This document shows, one piece after another, positions 805 to 48,775 of a stretch of DNA of 64,000 nucleotides; the stretch's first letter is position 1; every line of letters starts with the position of its first letter. A program made the translations under genes and the position numbers. The stretch is from positions 186,001 through 250,000 of the IMG/VR virus record IMGVR_UViG_3300019776_000324; one strand, 5' to 3'. The notes under the pieces are model-generated. The model saw only the letters and a list, made by a program, of their open reading frames with translations, was not told the DNA's origin and did no database searches.

Positions 805-1113
805 ATGTCACAAGCTGGAACAGTTACAAAAATAGAAGTTAATCAAATTCTTAAAGAACCTCCAATGTTTAAGGTGATCTATCTTAACGATAATCAAACC
901 AGTATGGAATTTGTAATTGAAACTCTATTAGACTTTTTTAATTATACTCCAGACACCGCAGTAAAAATTACCCAAGATATCCACGAACAAGGATCAGCAG
1001 TGGTAGCAGTATTGCCATATGAAGTTGCTGAACAAAAAGGCATCGAAGTAACAGTAAGTGCCCGCAGTCAAAATTATCCACTACAAGTTAAACTAGAGCC
1101 AGAATCGGCTTAA
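805..1113 (+). CDS. clpS: ATP-dependent Clp protease adaptor ClpS
   Basis: EPPMFKVIYLNDNQTSMEFV...IHEQGSAVV..YEVAEQK...YPL. Confidence 0.95.
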   Translation: MSQAGTVTKIEVNQILKEPPMFKVIYLNDNQTSMEFVIETLLDFFNYTPDTAVKITQDIHEQGSAVVAVLPYEVAEQKGIEVTVSARSQNYPLQVKLEPESA

Positions 1114-1234: not shown

Positions 1235-2020
1235 TCACCTAATTTCAATACGCTTGGGATAATACGCCAGTTGAGAATACTCAGTGTCCCCACGACCTCG
1301 GCAGTTGTTTGTAAATCTAACTCCTGCAAAGTCACGGTCAACACTTTTATGATAGTGCCCAAAGCACCAAGTTTTAATTTTGTTTTCAGTATCTTCATCC
1401 AGCACTGACAACAAATGTCGATTGCCCATGCAATTAAATCTCCAGGTATCAACTAGTTCTAAATCATGATCTATAATCCATGATGCTGGCAGAGTATGAG
1501 TTACAATTATTATTGAATGTACATCTGGATGTGTTTGTAATCTAGCAACACTATTAATTAAATATACAGCATCATGATAAGCCACACCATTTATATTATT
1601 TGCTGCGGATAGAGTAATGTCATTCCTTTGTTGATACCATTCGATGGTTTGCGCAACTTCGATATTTGGATCAAAATCATAACACCACCATCCATTTGTG
1701 GCCAAGATAGCAACGCCATTGACAATAACTACATTGTCTTGCATGTAAACAACATTTGGAATATTACTAACTTGCTGAACTAACTCTTGATAGCTTGCTC
1801 CAAGATCTTCTAAAGTATAACGATGCTCATCGTTGCCATCAATATAAAATACAGCGGCATAGCATTGTCCTAAATGAGTTAGTACATCAACAAGAACACT
1901 GCGGTCTCTACACACATCTCCGGCCACGACACAATATGGGCTGGTAGCTTGTCCAGTCCAGTCGAACTCATCCCAGGTTTCGATGTGTAGGTCAGAAATT
2001 AAATCAAAGGCAAAAGTCAT
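1235..2020 (-). CDS. Calcineurin-like metallophosphoesterase
   Basis: DLH, GD, GNDEH, H and GHYH metal-binding motifs. Confidence 0.85.
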   Translation of the reverse strand: MTFAFDLISDLHIETWDEFDWTGQATSPYCVVAGDVCRDRSVLVDVLTHLGQCYAAVFYIDGNDEHRYTLEDLGASYQELVQQVSNIPNVVYMQDNVVIVNGVAILATNGWWCYDFDPNIEVAQTIEWYQQRNDITLSAANNINGVAYHDAVYLINSVARLQTHPDVHSIIIVTHTLPASWIIDHDLELVDTWRFNCMGNRHLLSVLDEDTENKIKTWCFGHYHKSVDRDFAGVRFTNNCRGRGDTEYSQLAYYPKRIEIR

Positions 2021-5441: not shown

Positions 5442-5472
5442 AAGTACCCACTTTATTGTGGGTATTTTTTTC
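5442..5472 (+). terminator. Intrinsic terminator after the FecR gene
   Basis: TACCCAC-tttatt-GTGGGTA followed by a T-tract. Confidence 0.65.
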
Positions 5473-5484
5473 ATTAAATACTCT

Positions 5485-7533
5485 ATGCTTAAAAAAATAA
5501 TAACAAGTCCTTGGACAGCATTACTAACATTGGCACTAGTAGTTGGATTGCGTGTAGCAGATCCTACTTTTGTTGAAAGCGTTCGTCTGCGCTACTTTGA
5601 CACACTAGTAACTAGTAAACCTGCAGAGGTCATTGGAGTTAGTGTTGTAAACATAGACGAGAAAGCCTTAGAAAAATATGGTCAATTCCCTTTCAGTCGC
5701 GATATCTACGCTTCCGTTATTCGAGAACTTTATCGTCGTAACGCTGGTCTGGTGGTTTTTAATATTCTTACTCCTGATCGCGATCGTATGGGTCAGGATC
5801 AATCTTATATCCAAGCACTCAGACAGTTCCCAACCATCCTACCTAGTATTGGATCTACACAAACAAGAAACCAACCAAGAAACCCAGGAACGATTATAAT
5901 TGGACCATACCAAAATCAAATAGTTACATATCCTGGAATTATTGCCAACATACCTGCTGTTGAAAATGCAGCTGCTGGAGTTGGAATTGTAAACACTTTT
6001 CCAGAAGTTGACGGAGTAGTAAGACGCATGCCGTTGGTAGTAATGAGCGATCAAAAACTTTATCCTGGTATGGCCATGGAAGTGTTGCGTGTAGCAGCAG
6101 GAGACTCGACATTCCAGGTTAAACTAAACGAGAATGGTGTAGAGAAAATGCGCATTCCAAAGTTTGGACCTATTGCTACTGATAGTTTAAGTCGTATTTG
6201 GATTGACTGGAGTTTGGTTCCGGACAAGTATAGTTTAACCAATCTGCCAGATGATTTTGAAGGTGAAATAGTTATTGTGGGTGTGTCAGCCCAAGGATTA
6301 AGTAATCCAGTAGCAACAAGCATGGGTGAAATGCTACCACAAGATTTACAAGCAGCAGTATTAGGCACAGTAATAGCAAATAAAGATCGACCTGCTATCA
6401 CTCGCCCAGATTGGGCCGATGGCGCTGAAATTATATTTGTGTTAGTGGCAGGTATTTTATTATTATTTTTATCAAGGTGGGTTTATGTTGGACTTTGTGC
6501 ATCTGTTGTTATACTCGGCGGGAGTTTACTATTTTCTAGTTGGGCTTATGGAAGTCTCGCTTGGCTTGTGGACGCAACTGTTCCGGTCGCTGGTCTTGTC
6601 ATTGTGCTTCTTCATGCTTATGGTGTTAAGTTTGTAAGTGAGTTCTTACAGAAGCAAGCGATCAAGAAACAGTTTGCTGGCTACTGCTCTAAAGAAGTTG
6701 TGGATATGTTGCAGAAGGATCCAGACTTGATCAAGCGTGGTGTGCGTAAGGATGTAAGTGTTATGTTTAGTGACCTGCGTGGCTTTACTCCTATTGGTGA
6801 ACACTACGGTGATGATGTTGCTGGACTTGGCAAGTACATGAACGGCTATATGGATGCTATTAGTCAGCCTATCATGGACAACAAAGGCATGGTTATCAAG
6901 TATGTAGGAGATGCAAGTATGCATATTCACGGTGCTCCTATTGAAGATCCTAATCACGCAAGAACAATCGTTGCTGTCGGTCTACAAATGTTAGATGCTG
7001 TAGACGAGTACACTAAGCTAATGGAAGCACAAGGCTTACCTCCTGCGGCAATGGGCTGGGGTTGTAACTCGGGCATTGGCTTTATTGGCGAAATGGGAAG
7101 CACAGATAGACACAGCTATGACATTTTAGGTGATATGGTTAGTACGGCGGCACGATTAGAAGCTCGTTGCAAAGCATATGGTGTACTATGTATTATTGGT
7201 GCTGAAACTTACAATCGTACCAAAGATGATTTCTTCTACCTGTTGTTAGATAACTTACAACCAAAAGGTAAAACTGTGGCAGACTTGATCTACACAGTAT
7301 TACGCACCAAAGGCGCAGACTACACCAAAGAACTATCAACACATAACAAGATGCATGCATTATACAAAGAGAAAAATTTTGATGCGGCCGCTATCTTATG
7401 TGGAGAATTAATTGGTAAGTTTGGCGGACAAATGGACAAGTACTATAAGATTTGGATCGAGCGTTGCGAGTTTATGAAAGAACAGAACTTACCAGAAAAC
7501 TGGAATGGTGAATTTGTAGCGCACGAAAAATAA
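5485..7533 (+). CDS. CHASE2-domain membrane-bound class III adenylate/guanylate cyclase
   Basis: N-terminal TM; CHASE2 (IDEKALEKYGQFPFSR, DGVVRRMPL); three TMs; cyclase motifs MFSDLRGFT, KYVGDA, GEMGS, YDILGDMVSTAARLE. Start placed at ATG 5485 (ORF track 5458). Confidence 0.92.
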   Translation: MLKKIITSPWTALLTLALVVGLRVADPTFVESVRLRYFDTLVTSKPAEVIGVSVVNIDEKALEKYGQFPFSRDIYASVIRELYRRNAGLVVFNILTPDRDRMGQDQSYIQALRQFPTILPSIGSTQTRNQPRNPGTIIIGPYQNQIVTYPGIIANIPAVENAAAGVGIVNTFPEVDGVVRRMPLVVMSDQKLYPGMAMEVLRVAAGDSTFQVKLNENGVEKMRIPKFGPIATDSLSRIWIDWSLVPDKYSLTNLPDDFEGEIVIVGVSAQGLSNPVATSMGEMLPQDLQAAVLGTVIANKDRPAITRPDWADGAEIIFVLVAGILLLFLSRWVYVGLCASVVILGGSLLFSSWAYGSLAWLVDATVPVAGLVIVLLHAYGVKFVSEFLQKQAIKKQFAGYCSKEVVDMLQKDPDLIKRGVRKDVSVMFSDLRGFTPIGEHYGDDVAGLGKYMNGYMDAISQPIMDNKGMVIKYVGDASMHIHGAPIEDPNHARTIVAVGLQMLDAVDEYTKLMEAQGLPPAAMGWGCNSGIGFIGEMGSTDRHSYDILGDMVSTAARLEARCKAYGVLCIIGAETYNRTKDDFFYLLLDNLQPKGKTVADLIYTVLRTKGADYTKELSTHNKMHALYKEKNFDAAAILCGELIGKFGGQMDKYYKIWIERCEFMKEQNLPENWNGEFVAHEK

Positions 7534-43078: not shown

Positions 43079-43606
43079 ATGACAAATCGTGCATGGATTG
43101 CCACTGGTTGTGTATTATTGCTTATTTTACTGTTTCGACAAGAAGCTCGAATGGATATGCTAGAAGAAAAACTTGACGATATTATTCAAGTCAAGGAACA
43201 AGTCAAATACAATAAAAATGATGTTGAATGTTTGACTCGAAATATCTATTACGAAGCTCGTGGCGAAGACGATCGTGGTCGAATGGCTGTAGCCCATGTT
43301 ACTATTAATCGATTAAAAACTGGATACTGGGGTAACACGATTTGCAAAGTGGTCTATGCTAAGAAACAATTTAGTTGGACACTAGCAAAGAAATTGCCCA
43401 GACCTGACAGTCGAGTTTGGGCAGAGAGTGAAGAAGTAGCTCGAAAGGTACTAGCAGGACATCGTGTTCGTGGGTTGGCAAAAAGTTTGTACTATCATGC
43501 AACCTACATCAAAGATCCAAAATGGGCTGATACTGATCACGAAGTAGGTCAGATTGGTAACCATGTTTTTTACAATCGTGCAAAAGGTAGTAATTTAGAA
43601 ATCTAA
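43079..43606 (+). CDS. Cell wall hydrolase (SleB/Hydrolase_2), membrane-anchored
   Basis: CLTRNIYYEARGE...AVAHVTINR...QFSW...YYHA...IGNHVFY. Confidence 0.9.
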   Translation: MTNRAWIATGCVLLLILLFRQEARMDMLEEKLDDIIQVKEQVKYNKNDVECLTRNIYYEARGEDDRGRMAVAHVTINRLKTGYWGNTICKVVYAKKQFSWTLAKKLPRPDSRVWAESEEVARKVLAGHRVRGLAKSLYYHATYIKDPKWADTDHEVGQIGNHVFYNRAKGSNLEI

Positions 43607-43615
43607 GGAGAGACA

Positions 43616-45123
43616 ATGAAATCATATCGTTTTTTAGGTGAAGAAGCAGAAGCATTGGGTAACCGTCTGGACCATGCTCGTAAATGTGCCACTGGCGCAA
43701 AGACCGCTTGGGCAAAGAATTACTGGCAACGAAATGTAGAACGGTTATTGTTTCAATGGCGTCAATTACCTATTCTACACGACGGCGGCGCACAGATGAC
43801 TATCATTCCTAAATGGATGGTCAGTTACGATTTTTATGAAAAGTCTGGTGCTCATGAATATACTGGCATTACTGAACGAGCATATGACAAGTTATTTAGA
43901 GAAAGTGCCAACTTGGATGCAAGTTGGGAAAATCATAGATCAGCAAGATTAGCAAAGGCACAATAATGGCAATAATTTACAAAGATAAACACGGCAAGTT
44001 CTTTTATGTACAAGAGCGTTATTCGGTTGACCAAAAAGACTGGATCCGTTATACTAATACTATGGGTGAGGAATTTACTTGCCTTAAAGACGCATTTGAT
44101 GAACGATTTACTCCACAGGAGCAATAAATGACTGAAGAACGCTTGATGGTAGCAGAAGCTGTAATGGCCGGCCAGATTCCAGAATATCACTTGACACAAG
44201 ATGAAATTGATGAGCTGTTTGAACGATGCTGTGACCTGGCCACAGAAAAGTTAATGGCAGAAGCTGAAGAGCGTGGTTGCTCAGTGTTCTACGGCGTTGA
44301 GGGCGATACAGTACAATAATGTCCGACATCAAGTTCAAACGATTCTCTGCAGATAAACAGGAACAAATTCAACAATTTGTTGCTTATGCACAGATGTGCG
44401 GTTTGTCTGGCAAGGATATCCGTAGCATCGGCGATAAGCTGGATCGTGATCGTAAGGCTGAAGAGCGCCGTCAAAACTTGGAAATAGTTCAAGGCTTTGA
44501 ATGTTTACCCATCGGCGACGACAAGCGTTATAAGAATCATGGTGTAGGTTATTTTAACCAAATCTTAGATCGCAGATTCAAACTTAAAACTGCCCGCGGC
44601 CCTTACAACTTCAAACAAGATTACAACGGTTGGGAAATTAAAAGTTTAGAGACTGGCACAATTAAACGGCATCGTGTTGAAGTTTATGATTATCAACTTT
44701 CTGAAAGCAGTGGCTGGGAACGCAGAATGCGATATGCAGTATTGCTTGATATTTCATTTGGTAAATTGAAGTTAGATTTTTAACATGGATCACCAATTTA
44801 TTGTCATGTGGTGCAACGAAGGCTTGGAGTATGTGGCTGACATTACTGCTGATCAACAGCGTGTGGTGTGGGAAAACTTACAAGGTCACGAAAGTCCAAG
44901 ACATGCGTATGCCAATCCTTTCCATCTTAGATTGCGGGCACAACTTAACTTGGACCGACATTATGAGATATATATTGTTGATGGTGCAGAAGGTATAACG
45001 GAACAAGAAATTAAAAATATGTTTCGCTATGATCCACAAGGATCTGCAGATTTAATACGCAGTAAAGGTATTTGTTTTTACAGTAATCGACGAGATACAA
45101 CTCAACAATCGGTTATTGTCTAG
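43616..45123 (+). other. Hypothetical early ORFs (43616-43966, 44128-44319, 44319-44783, 44785-45123)
   Basis: SD-preceded ORFs; early promoter at 44027. Confidence 0.6.
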
Positions 45124-45129
45124 TTTTCG

Positions 45130-45352
45130 AACGCCGGGTGATACCGGCTAGTGCGACCCGCACGATAACTGGTCTTATCAACCGGGGGTGGTCCCAGTCT
45201 AACCCTAACTGGCGCTGGCAATGCGATAACGAGCCCTGTCGAGCAGCGGATGAGGCCTTGCGTAGTGTGACTGACACTGATCGGTGAACTCACAGTAACA
45301 GTAAGAATAGCTGTTGCAATGCTAAGGATATAAAGGACCGCCGGGGGCTGAA
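45130..45352 (+). ncRNA. Candidate structured non-coding RNA of unknown family
   Basis: GC-rich intergenic island with successive hairpins (45133-48, 45151-63, 45164-79, 45194-212) and a nested domain closed by 45232-37/45344-49 and 45246-49/45338-41; strand assumed. Confidence 0.55.
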
Positions 45353-45420
45353 GAGCATTTTGGTTGACGGACACAAGTATTTTTGCTATACTATAGCTCT
45401 TAATAACTTTTAAGGTGACA

Positions 45421-45873
45421 ATGAGACCAATTTGCGTAAACCTAGGATGTAACAAATTTGCCGTGCCTGTGCGCGGCCGTGTTGGCGAACCTGGAGTTAG
45501 GTATCGTGTGTTTTGTGGCGATTGCCATATTAGTAGCTACAGCCAAACACCGTTGCGTCCCGGAGTTACACCATTTAAGAAGAATCAATGTAGTAATTTA
45601 GATGGTCGTTTGGGATTTCCGTGTATTACTGATCACAGCAAGTTTGATCAAGTCAGTACCAAAGGCAAATTTGAAATCGATCACATAGATAGAGATCCTA
45701 ACAACAATGACCCTGCCAATTTACAAGAATTATGTATGCACTGTCACAAAGAAAAGGGCATGCGACAGGGCGACTTTGACAGGCACAAAAAAAAAGGTGA
45801 AATAACTATTTCGGGCAGACGCTTGAGATGGTCAAGTAAAATTATGTTTAACGAATTATTTGATGAAGCATAG
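45421..45873 (+). CDS. HNH endonuclease with Cys (Zn) motifs
   Basis: EIDHIDRDPNNNDPANLQELCMHCHKEK; own promoter TTGACG-17-TATACT. Confidence 0.85.
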   Translation: MRPICVNLGCNKFAVPVRGRVGEPGVRYRVFCGDCHISSYSQTPLRPGVTPFKKNQCSNLDGRLGFPCITDHSKFDQVSTKGKFEIDHIDRDPNNNDPANLQELCMHCHKEKGMRQGDFDRHKKKGEITISGRRLRWSSKIMFNELFDEA

Positions 45874-45894
45874 TATAGTGTGTTATAATAAACA

Positions 45895-46467
45895 ATGGCA
45901 AAATATCTAGACCCAGCAATCCTAAAAGAACTCGACGAATACCGAAAGCGTATTTTTAAAGAGCGTGAAGAAATTTATCGCAAGCACAAAATTGATGTGC
46001 TTGACACAGACACGCTGAGTTCCTTATCAGTTTACGAAATCGTCAGTCAATACGACGCCGACTATAATATTAACTTTGCTAGAAATGGCGAAGATGCAAA
46101 ATCTCAAGGTGTGCTAATTGAACAAAAATGCAGTCGTGTTGAACGACGCAAGCGATTAGGCACTTACCCAGATGCACTGTATCAATTTCATGCCATGGGC
46201 GATCTAATATATCCAAGATATATCTTAGTAAGTCGAGACAAAACCACATTAGAACTAGTTAGGATTTACGATATCAGTGCTCCTAAAAATATCAAGGTAG
46301 TTCAAGACTGTTTAATGGGCGAGCGCCAGGCTTGGGAAGATCGTTGTGCCATTGATAAAAAATATATGAAACGAGATGTAATTGGTATTCCTGAATCTGT
46401 ACTCAAAGACAATTTAAAAATTACAAAAACATTAACCGTTAACAATTGTGAAGTAACTATTGCTTGA
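45895..46467 (+). CDS. Putative PD-(D/E)xK restriction-endonuclease-like protein
   Basis: GEDAK....IEQKCS motif; adjacent to a methyltransferase. Confidence 0.45.
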   Translation: MAKYLDPAILKELDEYRKRIFKEREEIYRKHKIDVLDTDTLSSLSVYEIVSQYDADYNINFARNGEDAKSQGVLIEQKCSRVERRKRLGTYPDALYQFHAMGDLIYPRYILVSRDKTTLELVRIYDISAPKNIKVVQDCLMGERQAWEDRCAIDKKYMKRDVIGIPESVLKDNLKITKTLTVNNCEVTIA

Positions 46468-46479
46468 TATAAATACGTG

Positions 46480-47727
46480 ATGATATATACCCGGCAACAA
46501 TTTTTAAAACAGTTTAAACTAAACAAAAATATTAGTTATACAGACTTTTGCTCAAAGATTGCTGTTCTCAACGGCAGTGATACTTCTGGGCAATTTGTTA
46601 CTCGCAGTGACTTGGATACCTTTGTTAAGAAGAACGCAACCAAAGACAATCGTGTCAGTAGGCTAGACGATTACAAGAAGAAACTGTACCAAGTGCTGGT
46701 TACAGATGCAGATGAAGCACTAGGACAGTGGTTTGACCGTACTGCTGCTATCTCTGAAAATATTGATTATTATTTTCAACTTCCAAATGCCAGCATACTT
46801 GAAGACAAGACATTTGCTGGGCGCACACATTCCAAGTATGGTCGCTTGTGTAAGAATATAAACTTTGAGCAGTTCTTCAACACACGCAAACTATACTCCA
46901 ATGACTTTGAATATACATTTGGCTTGATGCGAGCCATGTTTGAAGATTTTAAAATTCGTAATAGTTTGGTTGGCCCTGCTATGTTTGATCATATATGCCG
47001 TATAGAAGATCGTAACTACGGGCAGTTCTGGACTGACTTTATGATGGGGTGTAATCGTGCAAGCGTATTCAATCCTGTAACATATCGTGGCATACTAGAT
47101 GAACTATTGCCAGGAGAAACATTGTTTGCACCTGTTATGGGTTGGAATAGCTATCAGCTGGCATTTTATAACAGTCACTTTAAACATTTTGTAGCTACTG
47201 ATGTGATTCCAGAAGTAGTCAACAATGGAAAGAAATTACACCAAGAGTGGTTAGCGTATAAAGATCGCAGTTTATTTGAACTAGAGGACAAGACTGTTAA
47301 GTTATATTGTTCGCCCAGCGAAGAGCTAGCAAAGGGCACAGACTTTGTGGCTATGTATCAAGGTCAAGTTGATGCGGTGTTGTTTAGTCCACCATACTTT
47401 GACTTAGAGATATATCCCAGTGCTGACCAAAGTTTTACTAACTATCCCAACTATCAAGATTGGTTATTGAACTATTGGGAAGCTACAGTTAAGACAGCTA
47501 AACAAGTTCTCAAACCTGGCGGCCGCTTTGCTTTTGTAATTAGTAACTATCGTAACAAGGCCAAACAAGAAGTCGCTATTAGCCAAGACATGCGAGATAT
47601 AGTTGAATTACATTTAGGTAAACCTACACACTATAAAGTACAGTGGTCTGCTATTGCTGGAGGTCGACAAGCTATGAAAACTAGAGATGGTAATTTTGAA
47701 GATCTCTGGTTATTTGAAAAGGATTAA
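46480..47727 (+). CDS. DNA amino-methyltransferase (N4-C/N6-A type)
   Basis: Degenerate motif I FAPVMGWNS, ATDV, catalytic SPPYF, LKPGG. Confidence 0.75.
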   Translation: MIYTRQQFLKQFKLNKNISYTDFCSKIAVLNGSDTSGQFVTRSDLDTFVKKNATKDNRVSRLDDYKKKLYQVLVTDADEALGQWFDRTAAISENIDYYFQLPNASILEDKTFAGRTHSKYGRLCKNINFEQFFNTRKLYSNDFEYTFGLMRAMFEDFKIRNSLVGPAMFDHICRIEDRNYGQFWTDFMMGCNRASVFNPVTYRGILDELLPGETLFAPVMGWNSYQLAFYNSHFKHFVATDVIPEVVNNGKKLHQEWLAYKDRSLFELEDKTVKLYCSPSEELAKGTDFVAMYQGQVDAVLFSPPYFDLEIYPSADQSFTNYPNYQDWLLNYWEATVKTAKQVLKPGGRFAFVISNYRNKAKQEVAISQDMRDIVELHLGKPTHYKVQWSAIAGGRQAMKTRDGNFEDLWLFEKD

Positions 47728-47728
47728 C

Positions 47729-48775
47729 ATGAATTACTTAGACGAAATTCGAGCTCGATATGATATCAAGGACTATGTAGAAAGTCCTGTAACTATACCA
47801 GAGCTACCTACAGATGGCATTGTACTAATTGTTGGCACAAGTGGGTCAGGAAAAACTACAATATTAAAAACAGTAGACAACCCAAAACCTATTGTGATTG
47901 ATCACGCTAAAACTGTCATTGAAAACTTCTCTACTCCTGAGCAGGGTGAAGAACTGTTACTGGCTTGCGGGCTAAGAACTATTCCTGCTTGGTTCCGTGC
48001 TCCTAATACTTTAAGCAATGGTGAGTTTCATAGATTTGAAATTGCTGTAGGCTTAGATCAAGGACACACAATCATTGATGAGTTTACAAGTGTTGTTGAC
48101 CGTGACACTGCTAAAAGTCTTGCTTATAGTGTTCGCAAGTATTTTGACCGTAATCCTGGTGTGTTGTATATTGCATCATGTCACAGAGATATCATTGACT
48201 GGTTAGATCCAGAATGGGTGTACGATACCGACTTACAGGTATTAGAAAACCGGAGGTCACCCTTTCGTCTGGGACGACGACCCGACATTACCCTTACCAT
48301 CAGAAGCACAGGTCCGCAGTATTGGGATATGTTCAAAAAGTATCACTATCTCGACACAAACATGAGTCGTAGTGGTCACTATTATGTTGGCCTTATTGGA
48401 GATAAACCTGTGGCATTTCACGCAGTATTACATTCGACCAACAGAGATATTCATAGTTACTGGCGTGGACATCGCACAGTTGTACTACCTGAGTTTCAAG
48501 GCATGGGAATAGGCACAGCATTTAGCGATGCTATTGCTCAGATCTATGTAGACAAGGGCTTAAGATATTTCTCTAAAACAGCACATCCTAGCTTTGGTGA
48601 ACACCGCGAAAAGTCTGACCTATGGCGTCCAACCAGCACTAACAAGAAAAGTCGTTTAGGTAGCTATCTACTTAAAGACGGTTCAGCTCGTAAGATGCCC
48701 GGCTACGGTGGAACTACTACAGCCCGAGATGCTGGTCGTATTTGCTACAGTCACGAATATATTGGCCAAAAGTGA
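47729..48775 (+). CDS. ABC-type ATPase fused to a GNAT acetyltransferase
   Basis: Walker A GTSGSGKTT, signature LSNGE, Walker B IIDEFTSVVDR, H-loop SCH; GNAT RTVVLPEFQGMGIG. Confidence 0.85.
   Translation: MNYLDEIRARYDIKDYVESPVTIPELPTDGIVLIVGTSGSGKTTILKTVDNPKPIVIDHAKTVIENFSTPEQGEELLLACGLRTIPAWFRAPNTLSNGEFHRFEIAVGLDQGHTIIDEFTSVVDRDTAKSLAYSVRKYFDRNPGVLYIASCHRDIIDWLDPEWVYDTDLQVLENRRSPFRLGRRPDITLTIRSTGPQYWDMFKKYHYLDTNMSRSGHYYVGLIGDKPVAFHAVLHSTNRDIHSYWRGHRTVVLPEFQGMGIGTAFSDAIAQIYVDKGLRYFSKTAHPSFGEHREKSDLWRPTSTNKKSRLGSYLLKDGSARKMPGYGGTTTARDAGRICYSHEYIGQK

Follow-up and report, generated by a model that had tools for sequence, protein, structure and literature searches.

A previously undescribed pseudoknotted RNA of jumbo phages

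A GC-rich island at the locus and its homologues

What does a GC-rich, apparently non-coding island directly upstream of an HNH nuclease gene encode, and is it functionally connected to that nuclease? We addressed this question for a 64,000-nt stretch of phage DNA (hereafter the window), corresponding to bases 186001-250000 of a 344,244-bp IMG/VR phage record with direct terminal repeats (IMGVR_UViG_3300019776_000324). A first-pass annotation based on sequence alone had described an unmatched RNA-like element at 45130-45352, with four consecutive hairpins and a nested multi-stem domain, sitting immediately before an HNH/nuclease/methylase block. It had interpreted this element as a novel phage non-coding RNA (ribozyme, decoy/sponge, or guide/scaffold), with a link to the HNH gene that it already considered speculative. 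The island lies in a 291-bp gap (45124-45414) between an ORF at 44785-45123 (112 aa, no Pfam or PHROG match) and an HNH endonuclease ORF at 45415-45873 (+; 152 aa, matching Pfam HNH_3/HNH and PHROG HNH families). In 100-nt windows, the first 240 bases of this gap have a G+C content of 54-60%, compared to about 33-45% in the flanks. The observation itself is confirmed: the consecutive hairpins and the nested 3' domain are real, and a covariance model of the family places the RNA at 45125-45360 (+), close to the limits first proposed.

Minimum-free-energy folding of the single sequence was no better than that of shuffled sequences (z = -0.85 on the + strand and -0.73 on the - strand), so that thermodynamics alone would have dismissed the element. 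The earlier failure to match known RNAs was upheld as well. ARAGORN found no tRNA or tmRNA in the window, and never called the element in homologous loci where it did call the flanking tRNAs and tmRNAs. The 4227 covariance models of Rfam 15 gave no match at gathering thresholds over the whole window, only one chance match (E = 9.4) in a permissive search of 45000-45500, and no match recurring at the position of the RNA in 14 member loci scanned at E <= 10.

Homologues were first reached through relatives of the two flanking proteins, which led to two viral contigs carrying the same island, one without an HNH gene downstream and the other with a different upstream gene. Conserved stretches of the island, used as exact patterns, then identified further members in viral contigs and in at least 120 contigs of a metagenome collection. 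A strict pattern returned nothing from one genome each of about 185,000 prokaryotic species, while a looser pattern matched at least 120 places in these genomes, of which the 120 loci examined scored only 13-19 bits with the family model, local to the pattern, and are chance matches. True members instead score 89-198 bits over the full model. In total, we collected 255 loci with 222 distinct sequences from viral and freshwater metagenome contigs, with lengths of 136-256 nt in the first two sets and up to 273 nt in members carrying insertions, and a mean G+C content of 53% against 42% in the flanks. Searches by blastn with the window region and two divergent members against 50,697 GenBank phage records found no match, i.e. 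no cultured phage carrying this RNA was detected, and the sequencing runs that hold the sequence are labelled as freshwater or aquatic metagenomes. Literature searches likewise found no description of this RNA and, although neither Rfam nor the searchable literature is exhaustive, we consider it a new RNA class.

Conserved structure and tertiary contacts

To evaluate the structure, we built a covariance model (R1; 197 positions, 36 pairs) from 32 members with short variable domains and a hand-derived core structure, and used it to align three sets of sequences (A5, A6, and A7). The window sequence is a full-length match to this model (129.4 bits, E about 1e-47, model positions 1-197) and the only copy in the 344-kb genome. 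These model-based alignments show strong covariation. In A5 (99 distinct sequences), 95.1% of cells form standard pairs, compared to 32-44% when partners are slid by 1-3 columns, and 24 of 36 pairs show changes on both sides (661 cells), with none of 500 shuffles reaching any observed measure. In A6 (72 distinct sequences, collected with a pattern that left hairpin H4 free), 95.5% of cells are paired against 31-46% for slid controls, and 28 of 42 pairs show changes on both sides. Across both sets, 0 of 500 shuffles reached the observed value on four of five measures. Importantly, however, the search patterns fixed parts of the core (TGGTYC, GGGTGGT, and the H5 sequence), which inflates the apparent invariance of these elements.

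The RNA begins with a short leader (45125-45132, UUUCGAAC) carrying the GAACG-type motif of the family, followed by hairpin H1 (45133-45148; stem 45133-45137 with 45144-45148, loop GUGAUA at 45138-45143), in which all 5 pairs show changes on both sides. After a UA dinucleotide comes hairpin H2 (45151-45163; GUGCG-ACC-CGCAC, triloop ACC at 45156-45158), which has 100% of cells paired, GC/CG/AU switching at two pairs, and G-U pairs that fix the strand as +. It is followed by GAUGAGAA and by hairpin H3 (45169-45185; stem 45169-45173 with 45181-45185, loop CUUAUCA at 45174-45180), in which all 5 pairs again change on both sides. The central strand, given as GGGUGGUN in the order of family elements, reads GGGUGGUC in the window (45186-45193) and includes GGGUGGU, invariant in nearly all members; a group of members carries an extra hairpin module between this strand and H4. 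Hairpin H4 (45194-45212; CCAGU-CUAACCCUA-ACUGG) has a 5-bp stem and, in the family, an 8-9-nt loop of the form YNNACCNA. It was invariant in the first, pattern-limited set, whereas 4 of its 5 pairs show changes on both sides in the set not constrained in H4, and further variants appear in read loose ends. Hairpin H5 (45213-45225; CGC-UGGCAAU-GCG, CGY-UGGCAAY-RCG in the family) directly abuts H4 and is the most conserved element. Its 7-nt loop, whose invariance was partly forced by the search patterns, has U at position 1 and A at position 5 and is T-loop-like by inspection only, while its third pair switches from C-G to U-A in 10 and 9 sequences.

A 4-6-nt joiner connects this core to a 3' domain of two nested helices. 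The outer helix, P-B (45232-45349; AGCCCU 45232-45237 with GGGGCU 45344-45349), is 6-11 bp long in the family and extremely variable in sequence, and all 9 of its model pairs show changes on both sides, with dozens of different complementary sequence pairs. The inner helix, P-C (45246-45341; GCGG 45246-45249 with CCGC 45338-45341), lies beyond a conserved internal loop, which inspection by eye did not establish as either a K-turn or a tetraloop receptor. The second pair of P-C switches from C-G (68) to U-A (28) to A-U (2) with no unpaired cell. An alternative long-range helix predicted by RNAalifold, GGUGGU with ACCGCC, was rejected in favour of P-C, as it shows only one-sided changes and A-C mismatches in 8 sequences. 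P-C also closes a simple 7-nt loop in the minimal, 160-nt member L135 (homologous loci are numbered with the prefix L). The domain enclosed by P-C exceeds 130 nt in other members. In the clade of the window (45250-45337), it includes a closing helix (about 45256-45259 with 45324-45327), a hairpin at 45267-45293 with a CUGA...GAAC internal loop and an inner hairpin at 45275-45286, and a hairpin at 45297-45315. These helices were read by eye from a subfamily alignment and change compensatorily between relatives, without a formal count. The RNA ends with a 3' tail (45350-45361, GAAGAGCAUUUU) containing the conserved AGC motif of the family.

A mutual-information scan recovered the modelled helices and flagged two further interactions. 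One is a pseudoknot (PK1, 45156-45189) in which the H2 loop A45156-C45157-C45158 pairs with U45189-G45188-G45187, i.e. with the first GGU of the central strand. ACC pairs with GGU in most members, AUC with GAU in two clades, and GUC with GAC, G(U)CC with GGC, ACU with AGU, and ACA with UGU in others. Given these five compensatory types, and three pairs retained in 99 of 99 A5 sequences and 177 of 177 parsable distinct sequences in the pooled set, PK1 is established by covariation. The other is a kissing-loop interaction between the loops of H1 and H3 (45139-45180), where UGAUA 45139-45143 is complementary to UAUCA 45176-45180. Across 47 loop-pair types, the mean longest Watson-Crick run is 3.64, compared to 2.31 for loops paired across types and 2.43 for shuffled loops, with many different sequence pairs and strands swapped in some clades, although one clade with GUAGCA in both loops lacks the complementarity. 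In addition, the second GGU of the central strand (G45190-G45191-U45192) is complementary to the ACC of the H4 loop (45202-45205). Both sides are invariant in 174 parsed members and both are lost together in the only lineage whose central strand reads GGACCUU (3 distinct sequences), in which the H4 loop gains GG(U/C). This provides good but not conclusive support, with no proof of the exact register, for a second pseudoknot (PK2, 45190-45205) that would extend PK1 into one continuous GGUGGU helix stacked between H2 and H4. Finally, G-U pairs outnumber A-C cells 371 to 103 in the helices and abutting tRNAs are always on the same strand, which identifies the + strand as the RNA.

Genomic neighbourhood, HNH cargo, and expression

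We next examined the genomic context of the family. Of 164 distinct members in the first two sets, 69 (about 42%) begin within 5 nt of the encoded CCA of a same-strand tRNA, 40 are followed by a tRNA within 12 nt, 30 have both, and 109 have a tRNA within 2 kb, with no preference for a tRNA identity. Many loci include 10-25 tRNAs within 5 kb, and several also carry a permuted tmRNA; the general context of the RNA is tRNA gene arrays. The junctions are exact: the tRNA CCA is directly followed by (A)GAACGU and H1, and P-B is followed by (A/G)AGCA and a tail that runs 8-20 nt into base +1 of the next tRNA. About a third of members, including the one in the window, have no tRNA within 2 kb. The phage of the window does encode a 28-tRNA array at 330-341 kb and a permuted tmRNA at 323 kb, but its copy of the RNA is located about 100 kb away, between protein genes. 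The RNA occurs once in each of six phage records of 52-344 kb.

In the clade of the window, the RNA follows a protein gene and has no promoter of its own. The nearest upstream promoter-like site (44027-44055 (+), TTGACC-17-TATACT) is a consensus match only, and the RNA probably ends this transcription unit, although co-transcription is inferred. A strong sigma-70-like promoter (45364-45392 (+), TTGACG-17-TATACT) lies immediately after the RNA and belongs to the HNH gene, and relatives in this clade also have a strong promoter right after the RNA. Across 100 loci, no protein family occurs within 3 kb of the RNA in more than 15, although one clade has an RNA polymerase omega homologue just downstream (PF01192, E = 2.7e-14). 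Likewise, five near-complete genomes encode no Rsr/Ro60, SmpB, or CCA-adding enzyme, and RtcB was found only in the phage of the window.

The co-occurrence of the RNA with the HNH gene, which had been suggested beforehand as a test of their association, was low: an HNH homologue follows the RNA in only 4 of 100 loci (the window, L003, L064, and L126). Close relatives with and without this gene (L126 against L032 and L140, and L003 against L028) are collinear through the last bases of the RNA, then carry 1-2.7 kb of unrelated sequence, and become collinear again. In the window, this island holds the HNH gene with its own promoter, a 190-aa ORF found nowhere else in the set, and a methyltransferase-like ORF. 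The HNH gene is therefore mobile cargo in a replacement hotspot whose left boundary is the conserved RNA gene. Homing endonuclease genes commonly lodge beside conserved sequences.

Four freshwater metatranscriptome runs contain contigs of 151-216 nt that lie entirely within the RNA (45136-45341), including one of 196 nt with 7 differences from the window (96% identity), while coverage of the flanking protein genes is zero. In contrast, four DNA metagenome runs cover the upstream gene about as deeply as the RNA, and some reach the HNH gene. While these RNA and DNA runs come from different samples, and are thus not matched controls, and contigs do not define the ends of the RNA, the contrast is what a stable, abundant small RNA would give.

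Possible roles of the RNA

Taken together, the interpretation of the first-pass annotation is partly supported: the element is a novel phage RNA, whereas a link to the HNH/nuclease/methylase block is not supported and none of the proposed roles could be proven, a guide for the HNH protein being the least likely. Our analyses directly establish a conserved, single-copy, + strand, expressed RNA with a compact pseudoknotted 5' core and a 3' domain holding a lineage-specific insert, found in jumbo phages that also carry large tRNA arrays and often a tmRNA, and not tied to any neighbouring protein gene. Beyond this, we infer that within tRNA arrays the RNA is cut out as a discrete stable molecule by the enzymes that mature the neighbouring tRNAs, with RNase P making its 3' end at the +1 base of the next tRNA and 3'-trailer endonucleases making its 5' end, although this processing cannot be general given the members without nearby tRNAs. 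In the clade of the window, the gene would have moved out of the array to the 3' end of a protein operon. We further infer that the RNA acts in trans, its near-invariant surface (GGUGGU/ACC pseudoknot helix, H4 loop, and H5 loop UGGCAAU) serving as a recognition platform for a conserved macromolecule that the phages themselves do not encode. A host component of the tRNA/translation machinery is the most likely partner, which would make the RNA part of the phage translation-support module. We consider this overall picture somewhat more likely than not, while the identity of the partner is only tentative, as both target and trans action rest on context and on the pattern of invariant unpaired nucleotides.

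Other explanations appear less likely. The RNA could be a ribozyme that helps mature phage tRNAs, for instance by cutting at or near its own 5' edge to free the CCA end of the upstream tRNA, as proposed for the minimal HDV-like theta ribozymes of gut phages, which also lie within 5 nt of phage tRNA ends (PMC10879173) and are also pseudoknotted. A core with many invariant unpaired nucleotides is typical of catalytic RNAs, and the 69 members abutting a tRNA are consistent with such a position, although the copy in the window and about a third of the family are not. However, HDV-like ribozymes have a nested double pseudoknot whose P1 helix starts at the cleavage site, whereas the leader here has no conserved complement elsewhere in the RNA (complementarity to downstream single strands of 2.72 against 2.56, and 3.70 against 3.68, for shuffled controls) and the observed or proposed pseudoknots join the H2 and H4 loops to a central strand. 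In addition, no Rfam ribozyme model matches, the spacing from CCA to H1 varies from 5 to 8 nt, members without nearby tRNAs keep the whole core, and the RNA, three to four times larger than theta ribozymes and found in freshwater jumbo phages, is at 136-273 nt with a conserved 3' domain far larger than a 5' cut would require. A similarly unlikely possibility is an RNA-only particle that would self-assemble into homo-oligomers through H1 and H3 loops pairing between molecules, as a small cousin of GOLLD and ROOL. These RNAs are phage-borne, highly structured, of unknown biochemical function, and typically located in or beside tRNA arrays (PMC12286853, PMC5737381), GOLLD having also been found in lake metagenomes, and RNAs under 200 nt can form cages and filaments (10.64898/2026.07.01.735769). 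The loop covariation cannot distinguish pairing within from pairing between molecules. Yet there is no sequence similarity to GOLLD or ROOL and neither Rfam model matches, GOLLD and ROOL measure roughly 580-800 nt and have a different architecture, one clade lacks loop complementarity entirely, and H1 and H3 flank a short hairpin that is itself pseudoknotted, which favours pairing within one molecule.

A ligand-binding aptamer, either a free-standing sponge for a small molecule such as a signalling nucleotide or a cis-acting riboswitch, is more doubtful still. The roughly 110-nt pseudoknotted core with invariant junction nucleotides resembles riboswitch aptamers in size and conservation pattern, but no gene class recurs downstream, a tRNA often follows within 0-12 nt, leaving no expression platform or regulated ORF, no T-box or other riboswitch model matches, and nothing points to a particular ligand. 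A purely cis-acting element, such as an mRNA 3'-end stabiliser, a terminator, or a DNA-level homing-endonuclease target or recombination site, would fit the location of the RNA at the end of a transcription unit in the window's clade and the adjacent insertion hotspot. This is very unlikely, however, given the compensatory changes, G-U tolerance on one strand only, PK1 and the proposed PK2, RNA-only metatranscriptome coverage, the absence of a called terminator-like site, and array-embedded copies that are not at mRNA ends. Least likely is a guide, scaffold, or regulator RNA working with the HNH nuclease: beyond the absence of the HNH gene after the RNA in 96 of 100 loci, its own promoter, its location in swapped cargo, and the general context of tRNA arrays, the 152-aa protein has only an HNH motif and no RuvC domain, unlike the IscB-type ORFs (RuvC plus HNH, about 400-500 aa) found immediately downstream of HEARO/omega RNAs, and the Rfam HEARO model does not match. 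A group I or II intron carrying a homing endonuclease is not supported either, as no intron model matches, the HNH ORF lies outside the RNA, and the RNA is intergenic or between tRNAs rather than inside a gene. Compared to the tRNAs and tmRNAs with which it shares neighbourhood, strand, and implied processing, the RNA has no acceptor/T-arm structure and no tag reading frame. Small stable RNAs of the T4 tRNA gene cluster (species 1 and 2) are also discrete RNAs of unknown function co-transcribed and co-processed with phage tRNAs, but no sequence relation to them is known. A further, unlikely possibility is a new class of functional RNA with its own biochemical activity, which could be a trans-acting catalytic or tRNA-recognising RNA that would use its invariant GGU/ACC pseudoknot core and T-loop-like H5 to engage tRNA 3' ends or elbows, and that jumbo phages would deploy with their tRNA arrays to remodel or protect the tRNA pool, for example against host tRNA-targeting defences. 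This would represent a phage RNA machine with no known counterpart.

Only a few classes of large or intricately folded bacterial and phage RNAs of unknown function are known (OLE, GOLLD, ROOL, raiA, and HEARO before it was solved), and each one that was solved revealed unexpected biology. With more than 220 distinct natural sequences, clear covariation for seven helices and one pseudoknot, a second pseudoknot and a kissing-loop contact also indicated, a minimal 136-160-nt form, evidence of expression, and a defined niche in the translation module of uncultured freshwater jumbo phages, this family is ready for structure determination and biochemistry. For genome annotation, it explains a recurrent GC-rich "intergenic" island and marks a hotspot where mobile genes such as HNH endonucleases insert, and it also offers a way to study why large phages invest in tRNA arrays.

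tRNA array, tmRNA and a conserved element next to tRNA-Gln

Outside of the window, the phage genome (record G000:C1) carries about 28 tRNA genes in one array at 330354-341019, along with a permuted (two-piece) tmRNA at 323249-323631, for which ARAGORN reads an unusually long tag. An RtcB RNA ligase gene (E = 6e-127) sits inside the array at 337721-338848. In some of the homologous loci, a conserved element of about 85 nt was identified between the structured RNA and the next tRNA-Gln, at 966-1053 (-) in locus L102, and also in loci L106, L115, L051, L043, L117 and L119. This element is predicted to fold into a Y shape closed by an 8-bp stem (MFE z = -3.6). It is called by neither ARAGORN nor Rfam, and could represent either an aberrant tRNA-like gene or another new small RNA.

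Protein-coding genes around the RNA and elsewhere in the window

The segment immediately following the RNA (window 45364-47727) is a hypervariable island, which in this phage holds the HNH endonuclease gene, a 190-aa ORF unique within the set of loci, and a 416-aa ORF with weak DNA methyltransferase similarity. Each of the first two genes is preceded by a near-consensus sigma-70 promoter. At window 47687-48775 (+), a 362-aa ORF was annotated as a fusion of a P-loop (ABC-type) ATPase and a GNAT acetyltransferase (PHROG 11143, E = 3.5e-83), which is conserved 0.7-2.7 kb downstream of the RNA in 12 loci, and is widespread in unrelated phages at 32-39% identity. In one clade of these phages, a 75-aa RNA polymerase omega subunit homologue (PF01192, E = 2.7e-14) is encoded immediately after the RNA, at 1307-1534 (+) in locus L012, with the equivalent ORF found in L007, L010, L069, L125, L130 and L137.

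Upstream of the RNA, a 175-aa SleB-type cell-wall hydrolase (PF07486, E = 3e-24) is encoded at a distance of 1.5 kb (window 43079-43606, +). Further away, a 691-aa ORF at window 5458-7533 (+) combines an N-terminal CHASE2 sensor domain (E = 1e-36) with an adenylate/guanylate cyclase catalytic domain (E = 1e-13). Such a membrane-sensor nucleotide cyclase, here assigned from conserved domains alone, is unusual for a phage.

Sequence variation within the RNA family

The H4 loop and adjoining bases of the RNA copy in the window (45199-45209) read CUAACCCUAAC, the same 11 nt as the vertebrate telomerase RNA template. However, other members of the family differ at this position, and we thus regard this identity as a coincidence. 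Beyond these local differences, a subgroup of the RNA family (loci L024, L388, L389, L392, L396, L399, L403, L404, L406, L407, L419, L426 and L427) carries an extra inserted module of about 40-60 nt between the central strand and H4, including a hairpin capped by a GAAA-type tetraloop. Such modules are typical of peripheral elements in large folded RNAs.
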